Assembly: GCF_002571385.2 (NCBI RefSeq)
Contig: NW_019218217.1
Location: 104,960 to 168,959, forward strand
DNA from: Stylophora pistillata
Taxonomy: Eukaryota
Reading direction: 5' to 3'
DNA: 64,000 nucleotides
The notes beneath the pieces were generated by a model. That model was given only the letters and a program-made list of their open reading frames with translations, was not told the DNA's origin and ran no database searches. Positions within the stretch are counted from its first letter, which is position 1. Every line of letters begins with the position of its first letter. The position numbers were made by a program, and so were the translations under genes. Shown piece after piece: positions 741-55,789 of this stretch.

Positions 741-1395
741 AGGATTTTCTCGCTTTCGCGTTGTCGCGAGCGAAAGAGGTTTTTCATGCCTCTCCAATAA
801 TTAACTGTTCAGTTCAAAACAAGGAAGAACCTCAAGCTCACTTTCAAAACCGCATTTTATGTTTTTGGCCCTTTAAAAGGTGACAATGGTTTTAAAATCA
901 TTTTAGATTGACTCAGAAACCAAACTTTGTAACGATAGTTATTCTGCTTACGTAGATGCAAAAAAAATATCACTTAGCCTCATTATCAACTCGCAATTCC
1001 ACCGTAAATAACTCGCTTCCTTAACCAATCAGAATGCAATATTGTGTTCAACGATGCCATTATATCGCAAATAGTGACTAGCCAAGGGCGTTATGATCAG
1101 GCTTTTTAATAACTTAAAAGTGTCAAAAGTGGTCCAAAACAAGGGAATCGGTTTGCAGGGTCCTTTTGCTTTCATCAATAACTAAATGAAACAAATCCTA
1201 TGTCAAATGTAGCTAACTGTTTCTTAACATTCTCGTAACTTCCAAGCTATCTCGATCGATATTGTTCAGCCAGTCGAAAGTAAGTGCATTGTATGCAAAT
1301 ACAACCAAAGGCTTATTTGAAATACGAGTACTTTGATCTCAAACAAAAAATTAAGGAATAGGTAAACATACGTAGCACAATAAATAGGTACTTAC

Positions 1396-1398
1396 ACC
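1396..1398 (-). CDS. Candidate 3-nt microexon GGT (array unit 1)
   Basis: ttgttttctttctttcatttcacctcatgctcaacag|GGT|gtaagtac. Confidence 0.55.
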
Positions 1399-1896
1399 CT
1401 GTTGAGCATGAGGTGAAATGAAAGAAAGAAAACAACAAATAGTCAACTGTTGTTAATCATTTTAGCATACTTATCATTAACCTTTATTCCCAGAAAAAAT
1501 GGCAGGAAACCTGTGTTGGTTGAAATCTCGTCTATTCGGAGACTACGTAGAAAGTTATTTTGCGAGTAGTGAATAGCGAAGGGCGTTACGATCAGACTTT
1601 TTAATACTTTAGAAATATGAAAAGTCGTCCAAAAAAAGGGAATCGGGTTGCAGGGCCCTTTTTGCTTTTATCAATAACAAAATGGAACAAATCCTATGTC
1701 AAATGCAGCTACCTGTTTGTTATTGTTCTCGTAACTTCCAAGCTATCTCGATCGATATTATTCAGCCGCTCGAAAGTAAGTGCATTCTATGCAAATACAA
1801 CCAAAGGCTTATTTGAAATACGAGTACTTTGATCTCAAACAATTAAATCAGTTAAGGAATAGGTAAACATACGTAGCACAATAAATAGGTACTTAC

Positions 1897-1899
1897 ACC
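1897..1899 (-). CDS. Candidate 3-nt microexon GGT (array unit 2)
   Basis: Same splice cassette as unit 1. Confidence 0.55.
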
Positions 1900-2393
1900 C
1901 TGTTGAGCATGAGGTGAAATGAAAGAAAGAAAACAACAAATAGTCAACTGTTGTTAATCATTTTAGCATACTTATCATTAACCTTTATTCCCAGAAAAAA
2001 TGGCAGGAAACCTGTGTTGGTTGAAATCTCGTCTATTCGGAGACTACGTAGAAAGTTATTTTGCGAGTAGTGAATAGCGAAGGGCGTTACGATCAGACTT
2101 TTTAATACTTTAGAAATATGAAAAGTCGTCCAAAAAAAGGAAATCGAATTGCAGGACCCTTTTTGCTTTTATCAATAACAAAATGGAACATATCCTATGT
2201 CAAATGGAGGTACATGTTTGTTATTGTTCCAGTAATTTCCAAGCTATATCGATCGATATTATTTAGCCACTCGAAAGTAAGTGCATTCTATGCAAATAAA
2301 ACCAAAGGCTTATTTGAAATACGAGTACTTTGATCTCAGACAATTAAATTAAGGAATAGGTAAACAAACGTAGCACAATAAATAGGTACTTAC

Positions 2394-2396
2394 ACA
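2394..2396 (-). CDS. Candidate 3-nt microexon TGT (array unit 3)
   Basis: ctcaacag|TGT|gtaagtac. Confidence 0.55.
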
Positions 2397-2890
2397 CTGT
2401 TGAGCATGAGGTGAAATGAAAGAAAGAAAACAACAAATAGTCAACTGTTGTTAATCATTTTAGCATAATTATCATTAACCTTTTTTCCCAGAAAAACTGG
2501 CACAAAACCTGTGTTGGTTAAAATCTCGTCTATTCGGAGACTACGTAGAAAGATATTTTGCAAGTAGTGAATAGCGAAGGGCGTTACAATCAGACTTTTT
2601 AATACTTAAGAAATATGAAAAGTCGTCCAAAAAGAGGAAATCGGGTTGCAGGGCCCTTTTTGCTTTTATCAATAACAAAATGGAACAAATCCTATGTCAA
2701 ATGTAGTTACCTGTTTGTTATTGTTCTCGTAACTTCCAAGCTATCTCGATCGATATTATTCAGACGCTCGAAAGCTAGTGCATTCTATGCAAATACAAGC
2801 AAAGGCTTATTTGAAATACGAGTACTTTGATCTCAAACAATTAAATTAAAAAATAGGTAAACATACGTAGCACAGTAAATAGGTACTTAC

Positions 2891-2893
2891 GGT
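2891..2893 (-). CDS. Candidate 3-nt microexon ACC (array unit 4)
   Basis: ctcaacag|ACC|gtaagtac. Confidence 0.55.
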
Positions 2894-3387
2894 CTGTTGA
2901 GGATAAGGTGAAATGAAAGAAAGAAAACAACAAATAGTCAACTGTTGTTGATAATTTTAGCATAGTTATCATTAACCTTTATTGCCAGAAAAAGTGGCAG
3001 GAAACCTGTGTTGGTTGAAATCTCGTCTATTCGAAGACTACGTAGAAAGTTATTTTGCGAGTAGTGAATAGCGAAGGGCGTTACGATCAAACTTTTTAAT
3101 ACTTTAGAAATATGAAAAGTCGTCCAAAAAAAGGGAATCGGGTTGCAGGGCTTTTTTTGCTTTTTTCAATAACAAAATGGAACAAATCCTGAGTCAAACA
3201 CAGCTACCTGTTTCTTATTGTTCTCGTAACTTCCAAGCTATCTCGATTGATATTATTCAGACGCTCGAAAGTAAGTACATTCTATACAATTACAACCAAA
3301 GGCTTATTTGAAATACGAGTACTTTGATCTCAAACAATTAAATTAAGAAATAGGTAAACATACGTAGCACAATAAATAGGTACTTAC

Positions 3388-3390
3388 CAA
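3388..3390 (-). CDS. Candidate 3-nt microexon TTG (array unit 5; upstream pyrimidine tract deleted)
   Basis: tagctgcag|TTG|gtaagtac; a ~300-bp deletion removed the normal acceptor context. Confidence 0.35.
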
Positions 3391-3580
3391 CTGCAGCTAC
3401 CTGTTTGTTATTGTTCTCGTAACTTCCAAGCTATCTCGATCGATATTATTCAGCCGCTCGAAAGTAAGTACATTCTATGCAAATACAACCAAAGGCTTAT
3501 TTGAAATACGAGTACTTTGATCTCAAACAATTAAATTAAGGAATAGGCAAAGATACGTAGTACAATAAATAGGTACTTAC

Positions 3581-3583
3581 AGA
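3581..3583 (-). CDS. Candidate 3-nt microexon TCT (array unit 6)
   Basis: ctcaacag|TCT|gtaagtac. Confidence 0.55.
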
Positions 3584-4849
3584 CTGTTGAGCATGAGGTG
3601 AAATGAAAGAAAGAAAACAACAAATAGTCAACTGTTGTTAATCATTTTAGCATACTTATCATTAACCTTTATTCCCAAAAAAAATGGCAGGAAACCTGTG
3701 TTGGTTGAAATCTCGTCTATTCGGAGACTACGTAGAAAGTTATTTTGCGAGTAGTGAATAGCGAAGGGCGTTACGATCAGACTTTTTAATACTTTAGAAA
3801 TATGAAAAGTCGTCCAAAAAAAGGGAATCGGGTTGCAGGGCCCTTTTTGCTTTTATCAATAACAAAATGGAACAAATCCTATGTCAAATGCAGCTACCTG
3901 TTTGTTATTGTTCTCGTAACTTCCAAGCTATCTCGATCGATATTATTCAGCCGCTCGAAAGTAAGTGCATTCTATGCAAATACAACCAAAGGCTTATTTG
4001 AAATACGAGTACTTTGATCTCAAACAATTAAATCAGTTAAGGAATAGGTAAACATACGTAGCACAATAAATAGGTACTTACNGTCACTGTTGAGCATGAG
4101 GTGAAATGAAAGAAAGAAAACAACAAATAGTCAACTGTTGTTAATCATTTTAGCATACTTATCATTAACCTTTATTCCCAGAAAAAATGGCAGGAAACCT
4201 GTGTTGGTTGAAATCTCGTCTATTCGGAGACTACGTAGAAAGTTATTTTGCGAGTAGTGAATAGCGAAGGGCGTTACGATCAGACTTTTTAATACTTTAG
4301 AAATATGAAAAGTCGTCCAAAAAAAGGGAATCGGGTTGCAGGGCCCTTTTTGCTTTTATCAATAACAAAATGGAACAAATCCTATGTCAAATGCAGCTAC
4401 TTGTTTGTTATTGTTCTCGTAACTTCCAAGCTATCTCGATCGATATTATTCAGCCGCTCGAAAGTAAGTGCATTCTATACAAATACAGCCAAAGGCTTAT
4501 TTTAAATAAGCAAAAAGTTCAAGGAATGGATAAACTTGCATAGCAAAAACGGTAATCATTAACCCTTACTCTTAGAAAAGGCCAGGAAAGCCGCGATGTT
4601 TCTAATCTCGTCTCTTTGAAATACTATCAAGAGATTTCTTTCGCTCTCGAATGACTCCGTGATAATCTATATATTCAGAATTCAATTTTTGCACGACATT
4701 CTACCTAAGAAGACAGCAACAAAATGTGGCGAATAAATAAAGGGAGAAAAAAACCTATGTTTGGAGGTCGAGGGTAAATATCTTAAGCGACATGGAATAT
4801 TGTTTACGGTTCTTGATTATGGTAAGTAGTGTTCTCAACACCGGTTTAT

Positions 4850-4851
<2 letters not shown>

Positions 4852-4895
<44 letters not shown>
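4852..4895 (+). repeat. (ATT)n microsatellite
   Basis: About 14 ATT units. Confidence 0.95.
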
Positions 4896-4896
<1 letters not shown>

Positions 4897-5383
4897 TTTG
4901 TAATTTTAATACATAATTGATGTGTTTCTTTTGCTTGTTTAGTTTTACATGCAGTTAGCTCGTTCGGAATTAGACGATCGAAGAGCTTTTCAAATAGCTT
5001 TGTCCATTGAACACGATGCGAAAGAAGGGAATGTAGTTTGAAACCTGAAGACTGTTTCGTCGAGAAATTCTATTATTGATCATTAAGTTAATTAATCCAC
5101 TAATAAGATACTTTAAAGTGATATCATAATACTAATGTAAGTGATTTGTCGGCTGTGGGCCCAACCGACTCACTTGGTAAATATCAAATCGTTTCGTATA
5201 CGTTATTATCTGAGCATTTCATAACAATGTGACTTTATTTTAAGATTCGAACGCACTTCTTTGATTGTCTGACACTGTAGTCGTCAATAAAGATGTTTGA
5301 TAATAGTGAACCAAAAGCCCACAACTGACGAAACATTCGAATCCCAATCGGTAACTCCGAGGACCGCGACGGATAACACTGAG

Positions 5384-8300
5384 ATGGCAGAAGAAGCCAA
5401 AAGCATTCGACGAACAGCCAAAGCAATGTTTGCCAGGATGCGCAATTAACTCCTGAAACCTATGGATGCCGACCAAGGACGAGAAATGGTCGAAGGTAAT
5501 TACGTGAAGCTTTCAGAAGCATGGGATATCGTTGAAAGTAAACACGATCTATACAGGATGTATTTAACGGATGAAGAACTGGAAGTCGTGGAGGGGTGGA
5601 TTACTGAGTTGCGGGGCCTGTTTGCAGAAGCGACAGCGCGTAAAATCCAGTATATACACAAATCAGTTAGATCAGAAATTGTCGTTCGAGAGAACACATT
5701 ACGTCATGAAACAGAAATGAAGGAGCGCGCGGAAAGAGAGAGGAAAGCAGAAGAGGCACTTACAATGCGCGCGAAAACGCAAACAGTTTTTAGCACTATC
5801 TGTAATAATAGAAAGCATTTTCTTGATAATAACATGGCCGCACATACTCTGGAAAGGTCTTTAAGACAGATAGAGGATGCGTATGCCGAGTGTAAAACTG
5901 CAAACGATGACGTTTTAGATTTAGCAGACCATGACACTTCAGAAAACGCTATAAAATTTGCATCACTGTNNNNNNNNNNNNNNNNNNNNNNNNNNNNNNN
6001 NNNNNNNNNNNNNNNNNNNNNNNNNNNNNNNNNNNNNNNNNNNNNNNNNNNNNNNNNNNNNNNNNNNNNNNNNNNNNNNNNNNNNNNNNNNNNNNNNNNN
6101 NNNNNNNNNNNNNNNNNNNNNNNNNNNNNNNNNNNNNNNNNNNNNNNNNNNNNNNNNNNNNNNNNNNNNNNNNNNNNNNNNNNNNNNNNNNNNNNNNNNN
6201 NNNNNNNNNNNNNNNNNNNNNNNNNNNNNNNNNNNNNNNNNNNNNNNNNNNNNNNNNNNNNNNNNNNNNNNNNNNNNNNNNNNNNNNNNNNNNNNNNNNN
6301 NNNNNNNNNNNNNNNNNNNNNNNNNNNNNNNNNNNNNNNNNNNNNNNNNNNNNNNNNNNNNNNNNNNNNNNNNNNNNNNNNNNNNNNNNNNNNNNNNNNN
6401 NNNNNNNNNNNNNNNNNNNNNNNNNNNNNNNNNNNNNNNNNNNNNNNNNNNNNNNNNNNNNNNNNNNNNNNNNNNNNNNNNNNNNNNNNNNNNNNNNNNN
6501 NNNNNNNNNNNNNNNNNNNNNNNNNNNNNNNNNNNNNNNNNNNNNNNNNNNNNNNNNNNNNNNNNNNNNNNNNNNNNNNNNNNNNNNNNNNNNNNNNNNN
6601 NNNNNNNNNNNNNNNNNNNNNNNNNNNNNNNNNNNNNNNNNNNNNNNNNNNNNNNNNNNNNNNNNNNNNNNNNNNNNNNNNNNNNNNNNNNNNNNNNNNN
6701 NNNNNNNNNNNNNNGCATCGATTCTTTCAGATATAACCGGAGTTTCAGTTTGAAAAACCTCAAACCTACTTTGCACACAACGATACTTGATAGAGATCAA
6801 CCATGTGCTTCATTTTATCAAATAATATCCAGTCACAAGAGAAACAGCTTGCCATTTCGGGCGAATTCTTCAATTGTACGAACTGGTTTGTGTTACGTTA
6901 ATATCAAAATAAAGTGGACGCGAGTACTATCAATACCATGGAAAAGCTTCATGAGGTAAACCTTGTTAATCTTAAACTTAGCCTAGAAATGATGAGAGAA
7001 AGCAATAATTACCTGAGGGAAACCAGTCTTCCGTGCGACGTCTTGCCATGCAAGTTCCTTTTTGTTGCGGTCTTTAAAATCTTTACTTGCTTTACCATAC
7101 AAAACTGGATATTGTCTCACCGCCTCGGAGAGAAGTTCATCTACTGACAGCTCTGCATTTGCCGAAGTGTCAAATCGATCGGAGTCCCCCATTTTGTTTG
7201 TGGATAGTTTCTCGAGGAGATATGGGTCAAAGTGAGCGATTATTCGTTGACCACCTTACGCTTATGCTTATATATGCTTATTTCACACGCGTTCGCACTA
7301 CGACATAAGCATAACAGCACAAGAAGAACGAACCTTGTTCGTTTTTCTTGTGCTTATGCTTATGGTTAGGTCGTGGGTGTTCTCACTTGCTTATGCTTGT
7401 GCTTGTGCTTATGCTTGCGCTTGTGCTTATGCGCAAGTGAAAACCAGCCTTTAGGCAGCGAGCCTGCAACTATCGTTAAAATCATTGACGACGATGTCAG
7501 GGAAATATGGAAAAGTCTAGATGAGAAGTCTGGAGATCCAGCAAAAGTTGCAGATGTCATTATTGACGGGATACGGAGAACTGGAATTATAAGAGAAGAA
7601 GAGGAGAAGAGATTTATTGAACTCGTAGAGATCATTGAAGAGGGCTATAGAGATCTAAAAAGGCTCGCTCTAGAATCGGAGATAACAAAAACAAGCTCTG
7701 TCAGTATCATAGAAAAGAAACTACCGGCGGACATTCGACGAAAATGGGCCGAGATTGTGAGCGCTGATAACAGTGCAGTTAATAAAACTAACAAATTTCC
7801 ATCGCTTCTTAACTTCCTACACAGCCAACGTAGAGCCATAGAATATGACACGGCCTCGCTAAGGGTACCAGCTGGTCCATTGAAAGCCGTCATTCACCAC
7901 ACAACTGCTGAGAAGGAAATCGATATGAAAGGCCAAAGACTGACGCAGGGTAAATGCTTAATTCAAGAGGGTGGCAAACATTCCGCTGAGGAATGTAAAG
8001 TCTGCTCGTCGCAGTCTCTTGACGAAAAGAAGACGCTACTGAAAGAGAAAAATGCTTGCTGGTATTGTCTTAAGGTCGGTCACCTGTCTCGTGTATGCAG
8101 AGCGAAGAAAACATGCAACATCAAAGACTGTCCATTGACACATCATCACTCTCTGCACGAAGAAATACAGGTGTTAAACACGTCCAACACCTCTGGGCCA
8201 ACAAACGTTTGTAGGAATACAGAGACTGACGCCTGCCTGTTACAAGTGCAGAAGATCAAAACCAAAAGGGTAACTTGAACGTGATGTGAGATAACGCATC

Positions 8301-11300
8301 CTCTCTATGTTTCGTTACCAATTCCAAAGCTAGAGAACAAGATCGTAAAGGAAAGAAAGGAGCTTTATCGAACATAAAGATTGGATCCCAGGATAAGAAG
8401 ATAAATACGATGAAATTTATACTACCCTTAGTTGATACACAAGGTAAAACAATACACATTGAAGCCTATGGTATTGATCAGATTACCTCAGACTTCGAAA
8501 GCATGAGCACCGAGAATCTGGCAAAGTTGTTTAACGGCGTGTCAAAGGACGATATCGCACGACCAGCGGGACCCGTCGACGTTTTTATTGGGTATGAGTT
8601 TGCTGCGTATCACCCTCAAAGAAAAAAGAACGCTAGACACCTTCTGTTACTCCAGACTTGATTTGGCCTTTGTATCGGAGTAACACACCCGTCGATAAAA
8701 GGCGAAATAAAAAAACATGACCTCAGTTACGCTCGAGTGCATCATGTAATAAAAGTAGAAGACTTGTACAAAATAGAGAATCTTGGCGTTGAAAGTGTTT
8801 AGCGTTGTGGAAGCTGCAAATGTGGACATTGTACTATTGGAAGTAAAAACTAAAGCATCAAAGAAGAAAAGGAGTTCGAGTTGATTGAGAAAAACATGAA
8901 GTTTGACGCTCAAGACAATAGATGGATCGCGGAGTACCCATTGATTTAAGATCCGTGCGATCTTCCTGATAATAGACGAGTGAGTAGCTCTAGCCATGCT
9001 GTATTCTACTGAGCGTAGACTGGAAAAGAATACACAACATGCAACTGTATACGATAACCAAGCTGGAGATATGGTTCTATAGGGGGTCGTCCGTAAACTC
9101 AGCAAAGAGGAACTTAACACTTACAAAGATGCTATCCATTACATTTCCCATCCGGAGGCGCTCAAACCAGACTCTAAATCTCCTCCAGTTACAATCGTGT
9201 TTAACAGTAACGCAAACTACATTGATTACGTATTTAATGAGTACTGGGCAAAGGAGCCAGACTTGCTTAACAGTCTGCATGGAATACTTGTGCGATTTCG
9301 CGAGAATGAAGTAGCATTCATAGGTGATATCAAGGAGATGTACCATACCGTTAAAACAACAGTGCTAGATCGACACACTCACCGATTTTTATGGAGGGAC
9401 ATGGTCACCGACAGAGCACCCGACACCTATGTGATAAAAAGAGTTTCACTCGGAGATAAGCCCTCTGCAACCATTGCTACGATGGCCCCGCGCAAGACAG
9501 CAGAGATGGGAAGTGAGCGATATCTGGATGCCGCAAAAATCGTGAAACATATATGGATGGCATTATATAAAGTACCACAGACCTTCCCACTGCCCTAAAA
9601 TGAATACAGGACATCAAGACCTTAATTATTAAGGGCAGATTTGAACTAAAAGAATGGATATTTTCCCGTGACTCAAGTAACAGTAAAAAGTATCTATCAA
9701 ATGAGTCAAACGTAGCGACCGAAAAGGTACTAGGAGTCAATTGGGACCCAATCCACGACCATTTGTGCTTTTCAGCAAAGCTTAACTTCTTTTCGAATCG
9801 GAAACGCGGAGTACAGAAAGGCAATCCTAGTAACGATTCGAAACTCACACCATCACTTACGAACTGATGATATTGTCAGAAGCCAACAGTATGTACGACC
9901 CTCTTGGACTGGCGGGGCCCTTCACAGTGCGGGCCAAAATCTTTAAGCGACATTTGTGGGAAAATAGCGAGAAGCTCGACTGGGACGATCCGATACCAGA
10001 AAATAATAAACAACAATGGTCAGCATTCCTTAATAAATAACCTGAAATGGATCGAGTCAAATTTTTCGGTGAGATGTTTAAAGCCTTCGGACGCAGTTTG
10101 CAATCCTGTTCTTATTATATTCTGTGATGCTTCAGAAGGCATTTACGGCTCCTGTGCGTATGTACGATGGCAACGACAGAGCGGAGGGTTTGCGTGCAAT
10201 TTGATTGTTTCTAAAAATCGCGTTGCCCCGACAAAAATATGTCTATCGAAAAAGTAGAGTTGTGTGGAGCAGTGTTAAGTGAGCGGCTTGAATCCTTGAT
10301 CGATAAAGAAAGCAGATACTTTTTTGAGAAATCCTATTACGTAGTTGACTCTCAGATAGTGCACGCAATGTTACAGAAAAGCTCCTACGGTTTGAATACC
10401 TTCGCCGCTACACGTATCGGTGAGATTCAGGAAGGAACCAACATCGAGGATTGGTATTGGTGCGAAAGTAAATTTAACATTGAAGATTGGTTAACTAGAG
10501 GAAAGAAGCCAAGTGAAATTAGTCTTCACAGCGATTTGCAACGAGGAGCTCTTTTTCTTAAACAACCCGAGAGCGAGTAGCCTATTTCTCGTAATTATTC
10601 TGAAGTAAGAATACCTCCAACAATTATGAAAGTAGTCCACACAGGGAATGTAACTGTTAAAGGCGACTTGGCGTCTAGAATCAAGATCGAACGATTCTCA
10701 GATTATAACCGTCTATCGAGAGTGACAGCAGTTATTTTAAACCTTTATCGCAGAGAACCCAAGGTAACCTTTAAGAACGCATAACAGGAAATAACAAGTA
10801 AAGATGTAGAGGCAGCGGAGGTATTCTGGATCAAAGAGGCACAGCGAAATATGGAGAACGATATAAAACATGGTAGGTACAGACGTTTGTGTCGTCGATT
10901 ACGAGATGATGGCATATATGTGATAAGTGGCCGTGCTGAAAAATAGCTAGAAATAGCCTACAACAAGAAAGATATACTCCTACCATGGCAGCATCGATTT
11001 GCTCGTATTTACTAGGAGTACATTCATGCTAAGGGGCATCACGGAGTTCTTACAACAGCAAGCAAGATCCGTGCAAGGTTCTGGATAACCAAATAACTTA
11101 AAATGATCCAATCTGTAAAGATCAACTGTGTGACGTGTAAGAAACTTGACAAGAAACTATCAGGACAAGTACTGGGAAACCTTCCTAAAGAAAGACTCAA
11201 ACCGAAACCCTCATGATATTCCACATCAATTGACTTATTTGGATCCTTTACGATCCGTGACGCAGTTAAGAAGCGTTCTACATCAAAAGCGCATGGGGTG

Positions 11301-11703
11301 ATTTTTAATTGCGCTGGAACCAGAACTGCATATTTGGAGCTTGCACCTGACTACAGCCCAGAAAGTTTTCTTATGGTTTTAAGCAGATTTGTCTTACTTA
11401 GGGAATATCCATCGAAAATTTATGCCGACAATGGCGCGAAACTTCTCGCAGCAACTCAGGAACTTGAGAAAGTTACGAAATCTTTACATTTGGAGAAGCT
11501 AAAAATTCTTTGAGGTATGGAAGGTTTTGAATGGAACTTCACGCCAGCTGATGCACCAGGGCAAAATGGAACATCAGAATCTCTCGTCAGATCAGTCAAA
11601 AGATCACTCAAGACTGCTATTGGAGAAAGCATCCTCACGTTTTCAGAAGTTCAAACGGTACTCTTTAAAGTTGCTAATCTAATTAATGAAAGACCTATAA
11701 CCG
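5384..11703 (+). mobile_element. Degenerate BEL/Pao LTR retrotransposon (gag-protease-RT-RNaseH-integrase), 3' truncated, antisense to the host gene
   Basis: Gag zinc knuckles (CWYCLKVGHLSRVC, CNIKDCPLTHHHSLH); RT (PDLLNSL..RFRENEVAFIGDIKEMYH, HRFLWRD); Pao RNaseH (IFCDASEGIYGSCAYVRW, SKNRVAP, ELCGA); integrase (YADNG, WNFTPADAPGQNGTSESLVRSVK). Many stops and frameshifts; LTRs not defined. Confidence 0.93.
6716..7450 (-). mobile_element. PIF/Harbinger-type element end with MADF-domain ORF fragment, inserted in BEL gag
   Basis: ORF 6983-7192 (LSEAVRQYPVLYGKASKDFKDRNKKELAWQDVA) is MADF/Myb-SANT-like. The end has subterminal TGCTTA/TGCTTG repeats, then gtgaaaaccagcct followed by TTA. The other end is in the N gap. 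Confidence 0.7.
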
Positions 11704-12224
11704 TATAAAAGTTGAAACAGAAGTGACCGTTTTTGACGGTTGATGACTAAAGCTTGAGCTATGCGATGGCTGAAAGTTAAACTCATTGAGACCTTTTAAA
11801 GTGGACGCGCTATCTGAATTAGACACGAAACATATCTGAAGGCATGTAAAGCAATTTTAAAATCATATATCATATGACCTGTACGGCCCGCGCGCAAACC
11901 TATAAGCCAAGGTGAAAGCTGACGTGTGAAGGGCCGACGGGTTGACTTGGATCGGTCCAGAAAAAACACTTTCAGCCCTGCACTTATTGGGATCTTTATA
12001 ATTTTCTGATAACGCATTTGAAATTGTGCACTTCAGATAAAAGTATAATAAATGAGAAAACGAGTAAAACTTCTCGATAATTATGACCAGCAGCAATAAA
12101 GAAAAATATTTTTTTCTGTAGAATGCTTTACCAAGTGTGCAGTGCGTACCTTTCTGCCGTATACATGTACATCCTACCTATTACGACAAAGGTTTCGAAA
12201 TCTTCAACACCTAGTGGTCATGTG

Positions 12225-12368
12225 ATAAAAGGCTTATTGATTGAGTTTGTTAGGACCACACGGGATAATATTTGACCCTCTGCCCGAGGTCATGCTCTCT
12301 GAACGAGCATGACCTCGAGCAAATTATTTTTCCCGTCCGACCCTCCCACTCAGTCAAAAAGCACATTT
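12225..12368. repeat. Short palindromic non-autonomous repeat
   Basis: Central hairpin cgaggtcatgctc...gagcatgacctcg with imperfect outer arms. Confidence 0.5.
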
Positions 12369-12549
12369 TACATGTCCCTTCTTTTTAAAATCCATCTCGA
12401 TGTTATGCTGTTAGCCACTGTATCAATAAAACTCACGGCCGAAAACGTTTTGTGCTCGGATTATCGGAAAAAGAAAATCCGTACTTTAGCTACAACACTT
12501 TCCCCTCTGCAAAAGTTCGATTACACTTTCCAACTTGTTACAATGAACT

Positions 12550-13950
12550 AATAATAATAAAGTATTATCGTTTGTCTCACGATATGGTCACTTGAGATGT
12601 GGATCGCGACATTTCGACTGCATCCGGCTATTCTTCATCAGGAGATAAGGTCTACTGACTTCAGGTCTTTTTATAAAGCAGGATGCTCCGCTGTGATTGG
12701 TTGGTATTCCCCAGCTGTGATTGGTACGATTCCTAGATGACGAGATGATGGTGTCTTTCGACGTATAGTTCCTTTTTACCAACGTCCCTGTCAACGCCGC
12801 TGTTCAGGCCGCATTGCAAAAACTGTAAAACGACCCCAGCCTCCCAGAACACACGGCGCTAACACCAGCTCAAATCGCCGAACTTCTGAATTTTGTTTTG
12901 AGAGCCACATACTTCCAGGTCCTCACGGCTGCCGCACCAGTATCGTACACAGGAAGCCCACACACACTAATCAATACTGAGCGTATGATTCACACCAACC
13001 ACAATCAGTAAAACATGGTATTGTTAAGTGTCTCCAAGAGTGCACTAACGCCTCCTGACAAAAGCTTCTGTCATCTCTCAGGAAAAGAAACATTTTTCAT
13101 CCGCTCTTACCTCTAATGACTACCCTATTTCTTCCTTGCAGAAAGTCACCAAGATCAGAAAATCTAACGCTGCTTCCGAGCCCGCAATCGATTTGAAGTG
13201 CACTGCAGTGTTACTTTATGTTAAAGGTCTTTCGGAACAGCTTCGCCGCTGCCTACAACAACAAAGCGTACGCGCTGTCTTCAAGTCGGAAATCGTAATA
13301 TGATCAGAGCTGGTAAGAGCAAAAGACGCTGTCGATTCGGCCAAACAAGACGGCGTAGTTTACAGGATTCCCTGTGAATGCGGCAAAGTTTACATCGGTG
13401 AGACTGGAAGACCAATGTACGACAGAATGACGGAACAAGACCGAGAGATCCGACTAGCTTGTACCCAAACCTCCGCCATTTCAGAGTACCCCTACAATAC
13501 CGGACACCAACCGCTTTCAAGTGAGATTAGGTTTATTAATCGAGATCCTCACTGATAAAATCGCAGGGTGAAAGAGGCTATTCACATAAGACTTCACCCT
13601 TAGAACATCAATAAGGACAGCGGATTAGAAATTCTTGAAGGGTGGATGGCTACGATCAAGAAACACAACAACAGGAGAACCGTACGACAGCTGACTACCG
13701 AGAGAACGTCTCACCAACATCAAGGATTAAAACGCGCCGATCATAGCTGTGGAATACCAAACAATGACAACGGAACATCCTGCTTTATAAGAATACCCGA
13801 AACCAGTCGACCTTATCGCCTGATGAAGACTAGCCGGATGCAGTTGAACGGGCGCGATCTACATCATAAGTGACCATATCGTGAGACAAACCATAATACT
13901 TTATTATTATTGTACTTTACCATGATGAATAAGCACAACCTTATTTACGA
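12550..13950 (+). mobile_element. 5'-truncated Penelope-like retroelement (RT tail + GIY-YIG endonuclease) with inverted pseudo-LTRs
   Basis: Plus-strand remnants MVSFDV..LFTNVP and GVVYRIPCECGKVYIGETGR (GIY-YIG), VKEAIHI; 12550-12725 is an inverted diverged copy of ~13740-13910. Confidence 0.9.
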
Positions 13951-14099
13951 AATAATGAAATAAGTTATAAACTTTGGATTAAAAAAAAACAAATGAATAT
14001 AAATAAAATNATTAATAACATTGTCTTAATTAACTTAATATGTAAATGATGAAACCGATAATGCATTAGAGGGTTAAAAGAAAAATAATGGCTACTTAC

Positions 14100-14102
14100 A
14101 GC
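14100..14102 (-). CDS. Candidate 3-nt microexon GCT
   Basis: Long pyrimidine tract (cctcttt...ctgttatc) ...gtgacaataag|GCT|gtaagta. Confidence 0.55.
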
Positions 14103-14266
14103 CTTATTGTCACAGGGTCAGTTAAGTTGATAACAGAAAAAAGAGAAAAAAAGAGGAAACAATAAAACATAAATCAATAGGTGTAAATTGACTTAGAACT
14201 TGTCAAAATTGTTATCATTCAACATTTCATAATTCCAGTGGGTTAACCCGTTAAAATAATACTTAC

Positions 14267-14269
14267 ATG
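14267..14269 (-). CDS. Candidate 3-nt microexon CAT
   Basis: ctaac ctttttctttttattactttcttctcctggtaactgcttattacag|CAT|gtaagta; clear branch point, pyrimidine tract, acceptor and donor. Confidence 0.6.
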
Positions 14270-15158
14270 CTGTAATAAGCAGTTACCAGGAGAAGAAAGT
14301 AATAAAAAGAAAAAGGTTAGCTCAATTAAAGAAAGAATATTGCACTAATGATAAATGTTATTTAATGAAGCTGGATTTATCATATGGGCTAAGGATTTGA
14401 AAAATTCCTCTCGTTGTCGGATTAATGGACTAGATGCCTTGAGGATTAATAAATGAACAACAATCCAAGGTAACATAGGATATTTGTAGGCAACAGATTG
14501 ATACATGTCTTTCCACTTGTTTCTTGCGTGACAAAGTTGTTTGTCAGAATACCGAAAATATTTCGACCTTTTAAAGCGAACTTTTTAACAGAAGCATTTT
14601 TGCTGAATACTGTCGAACCCTGTATTAAGCGGCACCGTAGTAGAGGTCACCCTGTATTAGTTGATCAGTTATCAGTCCCGAAATTTTTATTCCTTAATCA
14701 ACGTAAAATTATCACTTCCATTAACGGTTGTGATCAGCCTTTACTGAGTCCCAACGGCCCGTTTGCATTGTCTTTCACCTGTATCGAACGGTCACATAAA
14801 GCGAACCACTCAAATAAAACTAAGAATGATCTCTCTGTAGAATTGAATCCATATTAAATTCCCGAAATCAATGCACTTACTATTACTGGGCGAATTCTTT
14901 TACATGGATTGGTCAATTATGGTACAAATGACTTTTTTATCGTTTCCTTATAGTAACCTATTCTGTGGAACCGGCATGGAGCGGTTACCAAGCAATTTCC
15001 CGCAGGTTAACGTTTAAGTGTGAAATGTTCAGAAGGCAACCGTGGACGATACTCCTACTCTTGTACGTTGGATCAGCTATGATCTGATCGGCCCCAAATA
15101 ACGAATATGAAATATAAATAAGACCGATACAACGTAGATAAGTATATTTTAAGACGGA

Positions 15159-15199
15159 GCACTATATTTCGGCTGGCCAAACCAGCCTTCTTCAGGTGC
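15159..15199 (-). ncRNA. Minimal type I hammerhead ribozyme motif (Penelope/retrozyme-type fragment)
   Basis: Minus strand gcac-CTGAAGA-a-ggctgg-tttgg-ccagcc-GAAA-tata-gtgc: stem I, core, stem II and a short palindromic stem III. Confidence 0.65.
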
Positions 15200-16264
15200 A
15201 TTGGGAATTAACAGAGAATTGGGGTAATGCTTCGTAGTTAAGACAGGTTTGACTGTGTATAGGACGCTTGCAGAAATTGCCAGATTTTCACTTCATTTAT
15301 TCTTGTTCGATTAATTATGCTAAATGATGATAAGTTTGCTAAATATATGAGCGGAGGAAGAAACAGATTAGAAAAAAAAAATATTCTGCTGTTTTGGCTT
15401 TGTAATTTATTTCGGAATTAGTTGCACATCTGACCGGAATGGAGAGTTTTTTGTTTGTACTTTATCTTTTGAATGTCTGTCGCTCAATAGTGTTTTTTTT
15501 TTCGGGGTATTTAGCAAAGGAAATCGTGGCAAGATAACTCTTATTTCGTACTTTTAATTCCAATATAATCAGAATTGAACTGATGGAAAATAGTAAGAAT
15601 CTCTTGTTTCCAATTATTGATGAAATCATTGCTAAAGTGAGCTAATGCAATAAGTGTATCAAGGTCGACAGCGCCCGCTGATTACTGTATCATTATGACG
15701 CAAATAGATAAGATAAGATAAATGCTACTTCTTTATAGAGGCTCCTCTAAGTTAACATGCCATAATATTTTGCAGTTCATTTCATGGTAATAAATATCCT
15801 TCATGGTTCGAACTTTTTAAATCAGGGAGATATTTTTCTTCTATCAGGTTTGTCACTGTTTACTCTATTTTATTTTCCAACTACGCTCCGTAGAGTACAA
15901 ATAACGCCTACGACGGGTACAAATATAACTCGTTATTTGTACTCGAGAGAACCGGTTATACAGGTTTTCTTGCATCGCACAAGCGATGAATTGGAGTTAC
16001 AAAAACTGGTGGAGAATTGAAATCACTTTTCCGACGAGGAAGAGTCGGAATGACAGGCGAATATTGATCCAAGTTTATCGGATATATCGAACGAAGAAAA
16101 GCAGTTAGACGACGATGAAATTTCATCATCTTGTGGAACAAAACAGAAACAGCAACACGACAAAGGGTGAATTCTGTTCCGCTTCGCCTACTTCTGTCAC
16201 ACATTTCCGTAAAGAAATGTCCGCGAAATTCATCCGCACTCAAATTACAATTTGGCGTTTGGGA

Positions 16265-16430
16265 TAATAAGTAACTTATTAAGCGTTTTGTTGTGTAGTA
16301 TCGCTGAGTATTTCTTACTCGTTACTTGTATTTTGACTCGCCCAACGGGCTCGTCAAGATACGGCACAACTCTTAAAAATACTCAGCGATACTACACAGT
16401 AAAACGTCTCATAAAATATATTAATTTCGT
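16265..16430. repeat. Palindromic MITE-like element
   Basis: 22-bp perfect inverted repeat tgtgtagtatcgctgagtattt (16292-16313) / aaatactcagcgatactacaca (16377-16398). Confidence 0.7.
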
Positions 16431-17415
16431 ATGAAACAGAACAGACATTAACCTCGCTAAAGTAATTTCGCGACGATCTGCTGTATCTTATGCATGGGTT
16501 GCATTTTGTCACCCTCGTTGCTCAAGAACTGAATTGTAAGAAGCATCCAATTCAATTTGGATTGGCGAACTAGCTCAAATAACTTAGCCCCAGTCTCTCT
16601 CCAATGGCTATATGGAGTTGAGGAGGATAGGAATACTAGTCCTTCCACGTGGAAATTACTGCCGTAGTAAATTTTGGGGGAATTTCGTCGGCATTTTGCT
16701 AACAGCAGAAAATTAAGTACTGTAAGTCAGAAGAAAATGACGAAAACATTGAGAACACACATGACAATTACCCTGTTATATTCCTAATCATCAAGAAAAA
16801 CAAAACACCTCACGAACATGACGCATTCATAAAAAAAACAAGTCAACACTGTATAGGAAGATATATTTTGACTTGTTATGACTGATGGTCAAAGAAATAC
16901 TTTTAAGTTCCCATTGGGATTTAGCCACATAGGGCCGGTTATGTATAAGAGGTTTAACCCAAACCCCGGTTTTACGCAAGGACTGGGCCTCGAAGATTCT
17001 CTGTAAGAGGGTTAATTTTATTGGTTAAAGAAATGTCCTTCCACGATTAGCTTTCGGCCCTCTTGACACTGTTTACAAAAATAGATATTGATATAAACTG
17101 ATTGGGATAAATTGAAGATGGCTTAGAACGAGTTTTGTTAAACAACGGCTAAACTTTGTTTAAATGAGTAGCCTGTGGACTCTACGACATTGCTTACCCG
17201 ATAAGAGTACAGTACGTGTGTCACTTATGAAACTTCTTCTCCTATTTTATTTTTTAATTTTTATTTTAGTACCGAGCATAAAACCATCCATCACTTGACT
17301 TCTATTTAAGCACATGTCACGACCCTGTTTACTTTGTTTTCGATACGGTAAATGAAAGATACATAAAGATACGTATTATCTTCGTTACAATATTTAGTTT
17401 TAAGCTTTCACTTAC

Positions 17416-17418
17416 CGC
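17416..17418 (-). CDS. Candidate 3-nt microexon GCG
   Basis: ccttttctctgctctc...aaattgcatcag|GCG|gtaagtg. Confidence 0.55.
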
Positions 17419-17782: not shown

Positions 17783-17785
17783 ACG
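17783..17785 (-). CDS. Candidate 3-nt microexon CGT
   Basis: ctaac (branch-point-like) tttattgttgttctgtatttctctac...aaacaag|CGT|gtgagtg. Confidence 0.55.
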
Positions 17786-34400: not shown

Positions 34401-34436
34401 TCTCCGCAAACACCTGTTAATTCTCCGAGGAGGGTT

Positions 34437-42290: not shown

Positions 42291-42299
42291 ATTGTTATA

Positions 42300-46869: not shown

Positions 46870-48428
46870 TTGTTAAAATAGAGTATTGAATGTTGCAAAG
46901 AAACGCACAAACAGACCACATTTGATTTGCAATGCCAAAGAGATTCAGTAGGATAACGCTATCCTATATATGAAATTGTTTACTTTTATTAAAATTGCAC
47001 GTTCAACATGGATCCTCAGTCGTGCAATCTCCTGAGTTCTCACAACATCCTCCGGGGACATTTGCGTGGATGTTCCCAAGAATGGTGGAATATGCAAAGA
47101 CACACCTAAAGGTAAGATGTCACTTAAAATAAAACCTTTATCTGCCATGACAGAATCTCCTTCATTGAATGGCAGGTCAAGCATCCCTGACCTTTCTACA
47201 ATTTTTCTGTCTGATATACTTCCTGTATACAGTTGGCTTATGAAAGTGATAGCACCAGATGGAGAAATTTCCACAAGCCCTCTAAGTGTAGTATGATTCT
47301 TGTAGGCACTGAACAACTCACTATTCAGCAACAAGCTACTAGGCATTGCACACTTCACTTCCGTACAATGAATAATAACTCTTATACTTGGATATGACTT
47401 CCTGAAGTCTTCAGGCATTGTTCTGTTGACAGCTTCTCTTGCTGGCCAAATGTTAAGCACTCCAAATCGAAGATACATAAAATTGATCCAACTAATAATA
47501 ATCCTACTAACAGTTGCTTGAGATATATTAGACAGGTGGGAAAGGTGGGTTTCTGCAAATCGCTGTCTCAAGCGACACAAATTGAGAAAAAATTACTCTT
47601 GTGGTTTGAGCAATCTTGGTCTACCCCTCTTTACACCTACCTGCGGTGGAGACACATAGTGTTCTGAGGGTATCTTTCGCCTGACAACCAGTATCTGACA
47701 TTTTCTCCATTATCTCCCGGATCTAAATATTCAAAGGATGCCAAGAATGTTTTGTAGTTAGGAAAGCCTGTACAAAACAACATTGCCTCATCGGAGGTAA
47801 ATCGACTAAGTGAGAAGACATTTGACTGAAATGCTTGATTTTTGTCTTTCAAATCTGCAACTGTCTTCTCGAGATTTGCGCATTTTTTTTCAAGTAGCCT
47901 TAATGGTATACGGACCCCATTAAGATATTTCTCAGTGGAAGGCATTTCATTAAGACTGGTACTGGCGGCTCTTAATATAGTATTTTCATTAGTACCTGTT
48001 TCAGGAATATCGTTTGCTGTTTCAGGTGTTTTTCCAGGCTCCGAACACACTGAAAAAGACTCTTTTTCTGGGACAGATCTCTTCTCTTTTCGCAGTCGTA
48101 GATACGGCCTCTCGGTAGGGGAAAGTCGCTTTCGTGGTGAGGTTTGTTTCCAAGCAAATATCGACGGAACTGCATTTTTGTTCAGAGACATTCGTCCACC
48201 AAGACCCTTTGATATGTCACTAAGCTGGAAATCTAACGAACACACTTTTAATGCCTCGGAGATGCGAAAAAAGCTACCAACATCTCTACGTAAAGCATGT
48301 ATCCAACGTTTCTTCATTTCCTCTACGTCTGGAAACTTGAAGAATCCAATTAATTCTCCTTTCGGTCCGACACGCCCATTTTGTGCGCACAATGGTACGC
48401 AACAGTGAATATTTGACTTCGACGCCAT
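46870..48428 (-). pseudogene. THAP + HTH + DDE_Tnp_4 transposase of ISL2EU
   Basis: HCCVPLC..FFKFP..W..VCS..AVPSIF (THAP), ISQATVSRII (HTH), SAYKNHTT, VMADKGF, RIHVERAI. Confidence 0.9.
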
Positions 48429-48635
48429 GTTTATTGCGATACCTCCTAAGCCTCGTTTTGGTGAACTCGGCTCAGGTCTTAACCACGCGTCCGCCATTTA
48501 TGAATAAGGCGCATTGTTCAACAGAAACAAGCATATGAAATAGGAACTGTAGAGCCCAAACAAAAAAATTAAACTTTTCGTGCCCGTAGAGTCGATCGTC
48601 GAGTTGGTGGTCAACGGAGGTATATTTGTTTGGTA

Positions 48636-51850: not shown

Positions 51851-52491
51851 CGTAAAACCACCAGGAAAGTAAACAGTTGGCCAGCCACGAAAACAATGCT
51901 TCGCTTTCCCCTATAAAGACTCACCGGTTACTCATTTTAACGATATACAACGATAGAAATACTGACGGCTCGCAGGGAGAGGAATGAAAGCTTGAAATTG
52001 TATTTAAGAACGACTGTAGCCTGGACGCTTTGTAAAAACAAAATATACCCGGAACGGCGAGGAATATTCCACAATAATGCAAATGATGGCGAAAGATGAT
52101 CGCGGAAAAGCGATTGCATAAGGCGTATTTACTCATAGTTACACCTTAGTCTTTCAAAGAGCTTTGACTCGGTTACACATATGCTAACTGCGACGAGTAT
52201 TTTAATTAAAATCGAAGTCCATCGAAGAAAGACAGAGTTAAATTTTAACGTCGCAGCATTACTTCGGAAATGTGATAGAGGCAGCATTCCCGTATGAATT
52301 CGGAAGCTCGCTATTAATTGGGCTGCCGTCGACATATCGATTTGTTTACATCTGAGTGAGAGACACATTTGCATATTCTGCCCCACGACAAAAAATCAAA
52401 TCAGTAAGCATGTATGTATGTATCAGTTATTTTTATTCTTTTTTTCCGATAAGGACGTGACACAAAAATAGATCTAGATTATGGTACTTAC

Positions 52492-52497
52492 GGCCAG
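52492..52497 (-). CDS. Candidate 6-nt microexon CTGGCC between the two LDLa exons
   Basis: ccttttctttcatgttttatctgcaccaatcag|CTGGCC|gtaagtac; first AG after the pyrimidine tract; frame-preserving, giving the linker ...QC-T-G-R-KC... Confidence 0.55.
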
Positions 52498-53410
52498 CTG
52501 ATTGGTGCAGATAAAACATGAAAGAAAAGGAAAAGTCAATCAAATTTTCTTTTTATATGATTAAGATACCACTAAGACTGTATAAGCTTCAGCGGTAAAA
52601 TTTAGATGTTGTTTATCATGATGGGTGACACAAACTAGCATGTAAAAGAAAAATTTGTTCGTAAGCCCTGTCTTCAGCAATTTAGTTTCGCCTGCGTTGT
52701 GAACGGTTTATTTACTTTTTCCCGGTCAAATTGATGTAATCAGGCAATGTTGATGGGTCGATGACTATATTTCTATATTAGCTCTTTTTCAAATTAATAT
52801 ACCAACGCTTGAGGAACTCAGTATACCCGAGAAAACCCGTAGTATTCATTCAAAGCATAACATTTGTCTGCTTTCAGAATAATTTACATCGAGCATTTTA
52901 TGTTGCAAGATATAATTTGTTGTTTCCTGTCGCCAACTGAATGCATTTGCAATTGAGTTTGCCGGCCGCTAAGATACAAATGATCAGGTCATCTCGTACA
53001 TGAAATCGCAGACATCTTGTTCTGCTTATTACAGTTTATATCATTTGTTTTCATGGTAACTTTCACCATCACAAAAATCTCTTTCATACCATTGAGGCTC
53101 TTCATTCAAATGAAAGATGAACGGATATGACAGCATTTGACCAATAACCAACCATTACTGTAAAACTACCTTCCCACATGATAACATTATGCGCCAAGGC
53201 TTTATTTTGCTATTAGGATATGGTCTTGTAAATTGGGCTCTTGATGCACAATTTTTTTCTTTCTTCATTTCTTTTGGAAAAAAAAGGTATTTGCAAGTCA
53301 GCATGATTATTATTATTTTTTGTAATACTTTTAGGGTCGAAAAAGCACAGCCCATGATAAATGTTAAAATATATACAAGAATTTAAAAACAAATTAACTA
53401 CACTACTTAC

Positions 53411-53521
53411 TGCATTGTTCGTCTGATCCATCACTACAGTCCCTGTACCTATCGCAGCGTTCAGACGCATGGTTACACTTTTGTTGATTTGCACAAGTAA
53501 ACTGATCGCCTTCACAAGTTA
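53411..53521 (-). CDS. Host gene exon: LDL-receptor class A repeat (I)TCEGDQFTCANQQKCNHASERCDRYRDCSDGSDEQC
   Basis: 111-bp phase 1-1 exon, ctcatag acceptor and gtaagt donor, six Cys, F-x-C and DCxDGSDE LDLa signature. Confidence 0.9.
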
Positions 53522-55731
53522 CTATGAGATGATGAAAAGAAACACACGAATTGTGACAAATCGTTTACACTTCATGCACATTAAGGGCTACATCACGACT
53601 CATGCAAGCGCTGTCACAATTGAAAACCCCATAAATAGGCGGTTAGCAGTTTATTTTCAGGGATTGATCTTTTGCGGCTGACATTGTGAAGTTACATTTC
53701 ATCAGAGATCAAGATTGATCTCTGCGCGGTTTTTTTTTTTTTATGGAAGGCACTCGCGATGGGTCGGAGTACTCTTAATGACGACGCGTTTGACCTTTTT
53801 TCAGACTTAGCTGCAGAAAATATCTTGATAGCACAGAATTTCTGCATTTCTTTCTTGTCAAAGTTTTTGTTACCTTTACTTATTGACATTAAGCATGTTG
53901 TTTTTTATGATAATTTGTTTTTTCAATAAAGCTAACTTCCCTGGAAAGCTGTTATTCTTGTGTTATGTCGATTTCCCGATAATGCGAGTTCGAGTGAGCT
54001 TTTATGCTTATTTGTATTTGATGCTTTAGACTGGCAGAATATAGCCGTCAGATTGTCAGATTATGTCTTCGTCGATTGAGAAAGCCCTGAAATTTATTGA
54101 AACTCTCAGAAAAGGATCAGAAGGAAAAGGGTCTACATTATAAATTGCAAGGAAACAGTTGCCGCTGACCCTCGACTTCTTCAATTCTTTTTTTTTGTTC
54201 TGTCCTTTTTTTTAAGGTCGGTTTGCTCTCTCATTTCCCTTAGTATGAGTGTATCGACTAATGGTATTTTGTTGAGGAAAATGAAAAGTTTATTCTAAAA
54301 GAAAAAATAAACAACAAGAAAAAAACTGCGGAGGACTGAGAAGGGATAAGTAAGAGACATAATAATGATTTTAATAAATTTCAGCTGTTAAAAAAGCAAA
54401 GGAATTTTAAAATATAATTCAAATAAGTGAACAAATTTATCAATTTGATGTTGGTGTTATTGCTTTGCATTTATCTTTTCATGCAACTTCCCTATCAAGC
54501 ACTAGCTGACTTTGCTTTTTTTTTTATTCTTCCTCTTAAGAAGAGAAAGAAGCTTTTTTTCACTATTACGATCGCGATCATGTTCAATTTCAGATTTCTT
54601 CTTTATGGCTACATGCAAACTAATCGTAAACCAAAAGACAATTGTGTAAGGCGCATTCATAATACAACATTCGTTTAATGCTGCTACTATAGAAATATGT
54701 ATGGAGACGATACAAATAAATATAAATCTAAGGTCCCTATCGTTAGCTGATTGGTGCAGGTAAAAGAAAAGAAAAAGAGGAAAAGTTAATCAAATGATCA
54801 GATAGTTTTATGACAATACCACCAAACTCCATTCAATTTGCGGTAAAATCATAATTTCATTAACCAAGGGAGACAACAATTTATGTGTGAAGAAGAATTT
54901 ATCCGTGAGCTCCACATTCAGCATTTGTTCAAGCTCCGCCCCCAGACACCGCTCCAGTCACCAACCAATCACAGCGTTTTAGAAAAAAAAGTGGCGCGAA
55001 GTGCTTTGTATACAAGCCACACGCGAGGCCAATCCCACACGCTGAGTAAATCTCATAAATGACATTGATTGTATGCTATTGTTTACAGTTGTTATTTAGG
55101 GTCAATAGTGTTTGTATCCCCTAGTTTATTTCAATTTGTGATTTTCAATACCCAATCGATGCATTTCCTTTGCCTATAGCTCAGATGGCTCGTTCGCAAT
55201 TAAACAAACGGCCTCTTGAATAGCACTGTCCATACAACAGCATTATACAACCACCGCACCATGATATCACGTGACCTATCGAGTAGCTCCGTTCATATAT
55301 GAACAGATGAACAGCTTGGACAATAGTGTGGGCATAGGCGTTATTTTCTCGCGCCCCTCTGTCCGAACGTATTAATAACCACTAGCCTTTTACCCGAGAT
55401 GTGGTCTCTTTTTTTTTTTTTTTCTGCCTTTTTTCTTCTATAATGTCGGTATCACATGGTTATTTGATTTCGACCTATCGTCACAAGTAGTGAGTGAATC
55501 ATTTCTGTCAAAATTTATAGACATTACAATGAGTGGCTTATAGGTCTTTTTAAGTAACAAGTTGAGTTCTCCAAGTTCTTTTTTTCAGACCCAGAAAAGC
55601 ATGTTCCGAATAGGGTTGGAATATTTGTTTTTAATTTTCTCTAGCAGGTTAAATTTTCACATGCAAATATTCCGTTTACTTATCAGGGTAGAGGTGATAT
55701 CTAAACATAACCTAATATTACTGTAACATAC

Positions 55732-55789
55732 TCGCAGTTGTGAAGGGAACAGCTACCAGCATGAGCAATAGAACAGCCTGGGGATCCAT
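55732..55789 (-). CDS. Host gene first coding exon: signal peptide MDPQAVLLLMLVAVPFTTA (ends phase 1)
   Basis: Minus strand catag|attgtaATG GAT CCC CAG GCT GTT CTA TTG CTC ATG CTG GTA GCT GTT CCC TTC ACA ACT GCG A|gtatgt. Hydrophobic core ending T-T-A; phase 1 joins in frame to the LDLa exon at 53521. Confidence 0.7.

Follow-up and report, generated by a model that had tools for sequence, protein, structure and literature searches.

The 64,000-nucleotide (nt) stretch considered here, called the window below (C433:104960-168959 in the Stylophora pistillata assembly; the other C labels denote contigs of the same assembly), contains on its minus strand a gene with a signal-peptide exon and two LDL-receptor class A (LDLa) exons, followed by a long chain of candidate splice cassettes of 6 and 3 nt. 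In the interpretation that we favour, and to which we assign a probability of about 0.5, these cassettes are real single-codon exons, read in phase 1, whose residues form a rapidly evolving C-terminal tail of a secreted protein with two LDLa modules. Direct observations comprise the anatomy of the gene and of the cassettes, the bias of the cassettes towards one strand, the pattern of conservation, and the 6-nt exon in the RefSeq model of a paralog. A secreted two-LDLa gene continued by 6- and 3-nt splice cassettes had been proposed in the first-pass annotation of the window, and this outline agrees with the situation at 64 array junctions, where the splice signals are conserved and the enclosed triplets are hypervariable.

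According to this interpretation, the gene would encode a small secreted protein of a Pocilloporid family, consisting of a signal peptide, an LDLa module, the product of a 6-nt exon, and a second LDLa module. After the second module (LDLa2), coding would continue in phase 1 through symmetric 6- and 3-nt exons. Each 3-nt exon would add one residue, with every codon shared between two exons. Tandem duplication of a 497-bp module, formed by one intron and one 3-nt exon, would have given rise to part of the chain; the introns of different modules stay alike and the triplets differ. The length of the tail would change via unequal crossing-over, and its sequence via triplet change between paralogs and probably also between alleles. 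Thus the predicted diversification is a germline process of module duplication, loss, exchange, and triplet change.

Exons and splice cassettes of the locus

The first coding exon (55732-55789; it and all exons and cassettes of the gene described below are on the minus strand) starts with ATG, encodes the hydrophobic signal peptide MDPQAVLLLMLVAVPFTTA, and ends in phase 1, followed by GTATGT. P0151, P0098 and P0147, RefSeq proteins of the family, have homologous N-termini that are near-identical. The exons LDLa1 (53411-53521) and LDLa2 (19859-19969) are both phase 1-1 and have six cysteine codons each. Both are LDL-receptor class A modules, as their scores with Pfam PF00057, 32 and 36.1 bits respectively, are above the gathering cut-off of 24.1 bits. 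Modules of this calcium-binding type have about 37 residues, six cysteines and an acidic SDE calcium cage. LDLa2 ends with ...EQQC plus one C.

Between the two LDLa exons lies the 6-nt exon CTGGCC (52492-52497), which would add Thr-Gly in phase 1. Cassettes of this type (CTGGCC, CTAACC or CTAACT) are kept in nine loci and have near-identical flanks. The S. pistillata RefSeq model XP_022809406.1, placed on contig C1040, reads ...EQC-TG-RKC..., so the 6-nt exon is present in a gene model; the older model PFX13174.1 is without it. In the first intron of the window, a decayed copy of a 6-nt cassette was observed (54741-54800, minus strand), with the same pyrimidine tract and the acceptor ...CACCAATCAG followed by CTAACG and no GT donor; a second decayed copy of this kind is found in the paralog on C1393. 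In the paralog L157 (C1306:14507-14643), the 6-nt exon is CTAACT, and a TGA arises in phase 1 if LDLa2 starts with GA as it does elsewhere. Hence this paralog may be either a pseudogene or a copy obliged to skip its 6-nt exon.

Downstream of LDLa2, the chain opens with the 6-nt cassette CTCAGC (19304-19309; AG-free zone of 47 nt), found in five loci, four with CTCAGC and one with CTCGGC. It is followed by the 3-nt cassette GAA (18514-18516; AG-free zone of 158 nt, 14 pyrimidines of 15), whose triplet is read as GAA in five loci; C532:80938-81121 matches this region too, as a region match only. Next come CGT (17783-17785; CCT in two paralogs), GCG (17416-17418; AG-free zone of 102 nt; identical in C433, C532a and C1040), CAT (14267-14269; found in C433, C532a, C1040 and C1804), and GCT (14100-14102; GCG in C1040). 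The CAT cassette sits in the sole block that is still alignable to C1040 between 5 and 16 kb of the locus. All exons, LDLa domains and cassettes listed in the first-pass annotation were indeed found at their places on the minus strand.

The minus strand of the window contains 12 matches to the pattern AGNNNGTRAGT, compared with 3.1 expected for both strands together, and none of 100 shuffles of the window reached 12 matches. The plus strand contains no match; an equal frequency there had been named at the outset as an argument against the cassettes. With the tandem copies collapsed to one, there remain 7 matches against about 1.5 expected per strand. In all seven single-copy cassettes, and likewise in the array units, the AG-exclusion zone extends over 46-158 nt and the best 15-mer has 12-15 pyrimidines, whereas only 9% of background AGs have an AG-free zone of at least 40 nt. 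The donors of the single-copy cassettes are GTAAGT or GTGAGT. By these signals, the cassettes appear to be splice-competent and non-random. UGC motifs upstream of the acceptor, as in SRRM4-type microexons, were observed in 8 of 16 cassette types compared to 28% in the background, which is not significant. One extra match to the pattern, TTC at 9861-9863, absent from the first-pass annotation, lies within a retroelement remnant of the BEL/Pao type that is on the opposite strand; it fails the AG-free and pyrimidine tests and is probably due to chance.

The same design is family-wide: it is found, always on one strand, at no less than ten loci of the S. pistillata assembly. Arrays of the 497-bp module are present on C285 (two), C532 (two), C669, C1040, C1380, C1804, C1857, C2795 and C3671, and there are additional fragments. 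LDLa exons are located upstream on the same strand in C433, C1040, C669 and C285. The order of cassettes is common to the loci, namely CTCAGC, GAA, CGT/CCT, GCG, CAT, GCT/GCG, the array, and then the distal cassettes GTT/GCT, ACG/GGG, AAA/AAC, GAT, CTC, CTG, ACC, GTT, CTG. As predicted in the first-pass annotation, the chain continues off the window, with further cassettes for at least 17 kb past its left edge. In 11 paralogous stretches, the spacing from AG to GTRAGT is enriched only at exactly 3 nt and only on the family strand. All 108 unit matches lie in the arrays or in the fixed post-array remnant of the LDLa family, and the exact junction pattern has 50 occurrences, approximately 43 of them in family contigs (control, 11).

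A second repeated cassette type was observed downstream of the arrays at C1804:1-3800 (L021/L022) and C433:87900-89300 (L032), both on the minus strand. It consists of ...ATCTGATTCATTTGGG...TTAG, CTC or CTG, and GTRAGTAAC, and has a period of about 1.37 kb; cassettes ACC and GTT alternate with it, their donors being weakened in C433 to GTACGT and GTAGGT.

Array triplets and the predicted tail

The tandem array of the window (1072-4508, minus strand) was delineated by Tandem Repeats Finder (period 497, 4.7 copies) and by alignment of the units, each of which comprises one intron and one 3-nt exon. Its junctions are TGACN 4081-4085, TCT 3581-3583, TTG 3388-3390, ACC 2891-2893, TGT 2394-2396, GGT 1897-1899 and GGT 1396-1398. 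The intron of the unit is well formed: it starts with GTAAGTACC and ends with TTGAC, a pyrimidine tract and CAACAG, immediately followed by the 3 nt. The first junction, TGACN, holds a single N at position 4082; as written it has 5 nt, and the frame would shift. An intron-hosted structured RNA was considered and rejected, as a search of positions 1-20000 against Rfam yielded no match and the z-score of the fold of the unit is -1.1.

Among the 64 aligned array junctions of the family, the AG is retained in all and the GT in 62, and the enclosed length is exactly 3 nt in 62 cases. Of 500 aligned columns, the three with the highest variability are those of the triplet, with entropies of 1.74, 1.44 and 1.87 bits compared to the mean of 0.40. 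In pairs of units with flanks that are at least 99% identical, the triplet differs in 29 cases of 29, whereas other 3-nt windows differ in 1.2%. Array C532a shows the opposite trend. There, ACG, which contains a CpG, is retained in approximately 13 of 19 junctions, and the end branches of its introns in the tree have lengths of 0.007-0.12 changes per column. In C1040, the most diverged paralog, only the positions from -136 to +123 around the junction (about 250 nt) can be aligned, forming an island of conservation centred on the cassette. Taken together, the variable triplets elsewhere and the retained ACG in C532a point to triplets that are seen by selection and flanks that are kept for splicing.

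In the largest array, C532:62500-72900 on the minus strand (L023/L024), 19 junctions were aligned, and groups of three units form a higher-order repeat of about 1.49 kb. ACG and GGT account for nearly all of its triplets, which would yield a run of Asp with Gly-Tyr in phase 1 and poly-Thr in phase 0.

Alternatively, the cassettes might be regulatory pseudo-exons, that is, nested splicing stations or U1-binding decoys that help to process a very long, transposon-filled transcript and encode no selected protein. The locus exceeds 75 kb, its large introns bear transposons, and donors of consensus strength follow at regular intervals, all of which would suit such a role. The cassettes resemble recursive splicing (ratchet) sites, in which an acceptor within a long intron also has a consensus donor immediately behind it. 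However, at a classical recursive site the donor comes right after the AG, with no nucleotides in between, or else the exon is later removed, whereas here 3 nt would stay and change the message. AG/GTRAGT at spacing 0 occurs on the family strand 0-1 times per locus, as opposed to 2-27 times for spacing 3. Moreover, triplets varying more than the introns would find no explanation, and we consider pseudo-exons very unlikely.

Returning to single-codon exons, phase 1 is predicted for the cassettes, since LDLa2 ends in this phase and all cassettes are symmetric. Inclusion of all cassettes of the window in phase 1 yields PQRTCAC and later (F)(D/Y)LWW, followed by C, so that the absence of a stop under full inclusion, stated in the first-pass annotation, was confirmed. 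At other loci the predicted phase-1 tails are Asp/Gly-Tyr-rich or Arg/Trp-rich. For comparison, the signal peptide and the two LDLa exons account for about 95 residues, and the cassettes observed so far for about 20-30. With regard to stop codons, phases 0 and 1 do not differ, both being open, and phase 2 contains two stops; these counts are small. Where paralogs differ in a single-copy cassette, most of the changes read in phase 1 are silent or have a mild effect (ACG/ACC Thr, TGT/TGC Cys, AGA/CGA Arg, TAC/TGG Tyr/Trp), and all of them are replacements when read in phase 0. From these sequence features we infer that the 3-nt exons are spliced in and translated in phase 1.

The predicted tail could also be part of a more elaborate system, a codon-cassette diversifier. 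In this case the tail would be written one codon per exon, modules would recombine between loci, and subsets of exons would be skipped in splicing. The secreted LDLa proteins would thereby acquire a large repertoire of short, exposed, Trp/Tyr/Arg/Asp/Cys-rich tails that could serve in recognition, antimicrobial or calcium/skeleton roles. Modules would be duplicated, lost and exchanged by recombination in the near-identical introns. We regard the complete scheme as unlikely. Skipping of exons within transcripts is a matter of speculation, as is a role in immunity, allorecognition or the skeleton. The claim of the first-pass annotation that no combination of skipped cassettes creates a stop does not hold when the left neighbour of the window is included: GCT joined to AAC would produce TAA if the intervening cassette, whose triplet falls in a gap of 21 N, were skipped.

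Gene models, intron copies and rival readings

Several observations weigh against the single-codon exons. Firstly, a 3-nt exon is present in none of the three RefSeq models of the family. XP_022809406.1 joins LDLa2 to an exon located 60 nt behind the GCG cassette and terminates there (RYIDAQAQ*), bypassing the CCT and GCG cassettes, which were either truly skipped or lost by aligners. The model XP_066014615.1 of Pocillopora verrucosa ends with ...EQQC-TQRK*. This fits A+CTCAGC+GAA+..., but is equally readable as CTCAGC followed by unspliced GTAAGTGA, and would then support only the acceptor before CTCAGC. Direct splicing of LDLa2 to an ordinary exon, which according to the first-pass annotation would refute the chain if found in transcripts, is seen in the C1040 model, whereas the Pocillopora model uses the CTCAGC acceptor. 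Secondly, searches with the LDLa2 exon and the family proteins found no transcript-derived family protein among 5.8 billion proteins; the matches were genomic read-through fragments and the three RefSeq models only. A scan of metagenomes with the last 15 nt of LDLa2 produced only unspecific matches, including one unrelated animal LDLa exon (L080). Thirdly, neither a terminal exon nor any other gene end was found within the 20 kb fetched to the left of the window.

The cassettes themselves contribute to the doubt. The uniform build ascribed to them in the first-pass annotation, with a pyrimidine tract, an AG-free spacer and a consensus donor, holds for the seven single-copy cassettes and the array units but breaks down at TTG 3388-3390. 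At this site the junction was created by an internal deletion in the repeat; the AG-free zone measures 4 nt, a pyrimidine tract is lacking, and the site is doubtful as a cassette. The argument for phase 1 from synonymous changes involves only about five sites and seems weak. Finally, the intron tree is star-like, and copies identical to its central node occur in five loci. In three cassettes the triplet itself is hit by an ambiguous base or a short gap, which suggests a disagreement there between reads of different units or alleles. These sites are at position 4082 of the window, at C1380:7529 (L013), and in C433 (L031), where 21 N follow ...GGATATGTCAG. The Ns at junction triplets and the star-like tree together suggest some collapse or consensus correction of the arrays in the short-read assembly, and the contrast between triplets and flanks may therefore be inflated.

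The gene models may be taken at face value. The family would then encode short proteins of about 100 residues, with the signal peptide, two LDLa modules and a terminal exon soon after LDLa2. The cassettes would belong only to untranslated RNA, such as an extension of the 3' untranslated region, a separate non-coding transcript or a splice-only unit, and the triplets would have no coding meaning. This is possible, although rather unlikely. All three RefSeq models end a few residues past LDLa2, and there is no longer family protein among proteins of 53-280 residues. However, the models end in three different ways (RYIDAQAQ*, TQRK* and a repeat-derived exon), which looks like truncation. A T10 tract accompanies the terminal exon of C1040 and has no counterpart in the window and in C532a. 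The sites of these two loci that match the C1040 terminal acceptor are poor acceptors, the one in the window having another AG 8 nt upstream. In addition, neutral triplets should vary like the intron, whereas in most arrays they are the top three of the 500 columns; the retention of ACG in C532a despite CpG decay and the exact exon length at nearly all junctions are not expected either.

The RefSeq model XP_022777558.1 ("CD320 antigen-like") was considered as evidence for a tail built of microexons and was rejected, since its tail is a copy of a repeat. Its last coding exon coincides with a short interspersed repeat at C1663:21030-21128, whose translation contains GLNPPPPAQQSGAVPIELT; a genome-wide search for this repeat gave 4,454 first-look candidates, of which 150 were scored. 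This exon is probably either an exonised repeat or an artefact of the model.

The intron tree bears on a different possibility, namely that the 494-nt intron is a mobile or homing-type element, introner-like, or a satellite bearing splice sites that copies itself beside existing copies, the triplets being unselected leftovers of the target. Apart from the star-like topology, the node-identical copies have unrelated triplets on both sides, their borders are exactly at the GT and the AG, and identical neighbouring triplets are common (GGT GGT, GGA GGA, CCT CCT). On the other hand, the module is confined to arrays that occupy one and the same relative position in the genes of a single family, and it was never observed as a lone intron elsewhere, and the constant 3-nt spacing suits tandem duplication of an intron together with an exon. 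Some triplets are linked to flank variants (ACC with TTATCC; GGA with GTAAGTATC), as in ordinary descent. A mobile intron thus seems a doubtful explanation, and even so the mRNA would contain the triplets.

If the Ns and the collapse of copies are taken further, the arrays and their odd triplets might be products of repeat mis-assembly altogether. In two arrays (C433 and C1380) a single N coincides with a junction triplet, and arrays are carried by many small contigs. However, collapse alters the number or order of copies and cannot invent a pattern; more than 60 junctions on 11 contigs agree, and the seven single-copy cassettes outside the repeats show the same design. A pure assembly artefact is therefore highly improbable.

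Relation to known systems and other features of the locus

Were the cassettes indeed single-codon exons, the closest analogy would be with the micro-exon genes (MEGs) of Schistosoma. In both cases a signal-peptide exon of ordinary size precedes a series of tiny symmetric exons, none above about 36 nt, that lie on one strand, have proper splice sites and alternate with much longer introns, and the family is secreted, multi-copy, fast-evolving and lineage-restricted. MEG exons have been reported down to 3-6 bp, and the MEGs are described as specific to Schistosomatidae (bioRxiv 10.1101/2023.06.21.545858). However, most MEG exons are about 15 bp and micro-exons provide the bulk of the protein, whereas in the coral family the bulk is formed by the two LDLa exons, the micro-exons are the smaller part of the coding sequence (the residue counts are given above), and the chain is almost entirely of 3-nt exons and partly composed of near-identical modules, each an intron plus a codon, in tandem. 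The coral host is a cnidarian, a relationship with MEGs in sequence or by descent is not expected, and the coral tails are too short for a comparison. Splicing and alternative skipping, demonstrated for MEGs, are putative in the coral.

Isolated 3-nt microexons, as in cytohesin-1, homothorax and RPS24, also have strong splice sites and exactly 3 nt and add one residue; they are usually missed by aligners and gene models (PMC6314551, PMC7392893, PMC7821500). Such microexons are old and conserved in sequence, unlike the coral ones, which occur more than 15 in a row per locus and are young, tandem-multiplied and variable. The array introns resemble introners in being numerous and near-identical, with exact GT...AG borders and a star-like tree. 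Introners, however, are scattered over many unrelated genes, and the coral module is confined to the arrays of one family, with copies always 3 nt apart. Finally, the ordinary exons of the gene recall small secreted or membrane proteins with one or two LDLa modules behind a signal peptide and no other modules (VLDLR-like and CD320-like in RefSeq). In contrast to the LDLR family proper, no other LDLR-family domains are present, and the RefSeq names are automatic.

Among the papers searched, none was found that describes 3-nt exons in runs or tandem arrays, or this LDLa family. If the interpretation as single-codon exons is correct, this would be the most extreme micro-exon architecture known to us, each gene having over 15 single-codon exons in succession, and proteins would evolve in units of a tandem module that joins a single intron to a single codon. 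The spliceosome would have to be able to process long runs of 3-nt exons. Micro-exon genes would have arisen independently a second time, outside the flatworms, and the family would offer a simple system in which duplication and recombination at the level of exons diversify secreted proteins of a reef-building coral. Gene models and read aligners would miss this part of the gene entirely.

The intron between CTGGCC and LDLa2 is 33 kb long and contains integrase and THAP-domain transposon ORFs (open reading frames). The unusual size of this intron and of the 9.6-kb intron of the window is explained by the transposon remnants inside them; the matching introns of paralogs are shorter, 1.8 kb in C1040 and 2.4 kb in C532a. 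Two gaps of the assembly fall within the window, and neither touches a proposed exon or the frame, both being intronic in the model. The gap at 19567-19706, in the intron between LDLa2 and CTCAGC, has flanks collinear with the paralog L166, where the corresponding segment is 98 nt long and free of cassettes. The gap at 5970-6714 is in the transposon-bearing intron before the array; its flanks are collinear with C1857 and C1380, and the paralog sequence opposite it is about 1.4-2 kb with no cassette. The same intron contains the BEL/Pao retroelement remnant (5400-10600, plus strand), recognized by Pfam Peptidase_A17 and DUF1759 on plus-strand ORFs. The transposon remnants of the 33-kb intron, with an integrase core (rva_4) and a THAP-domain ORF, are located at 25141-25944 and 47637-48497, both on the minus strand.

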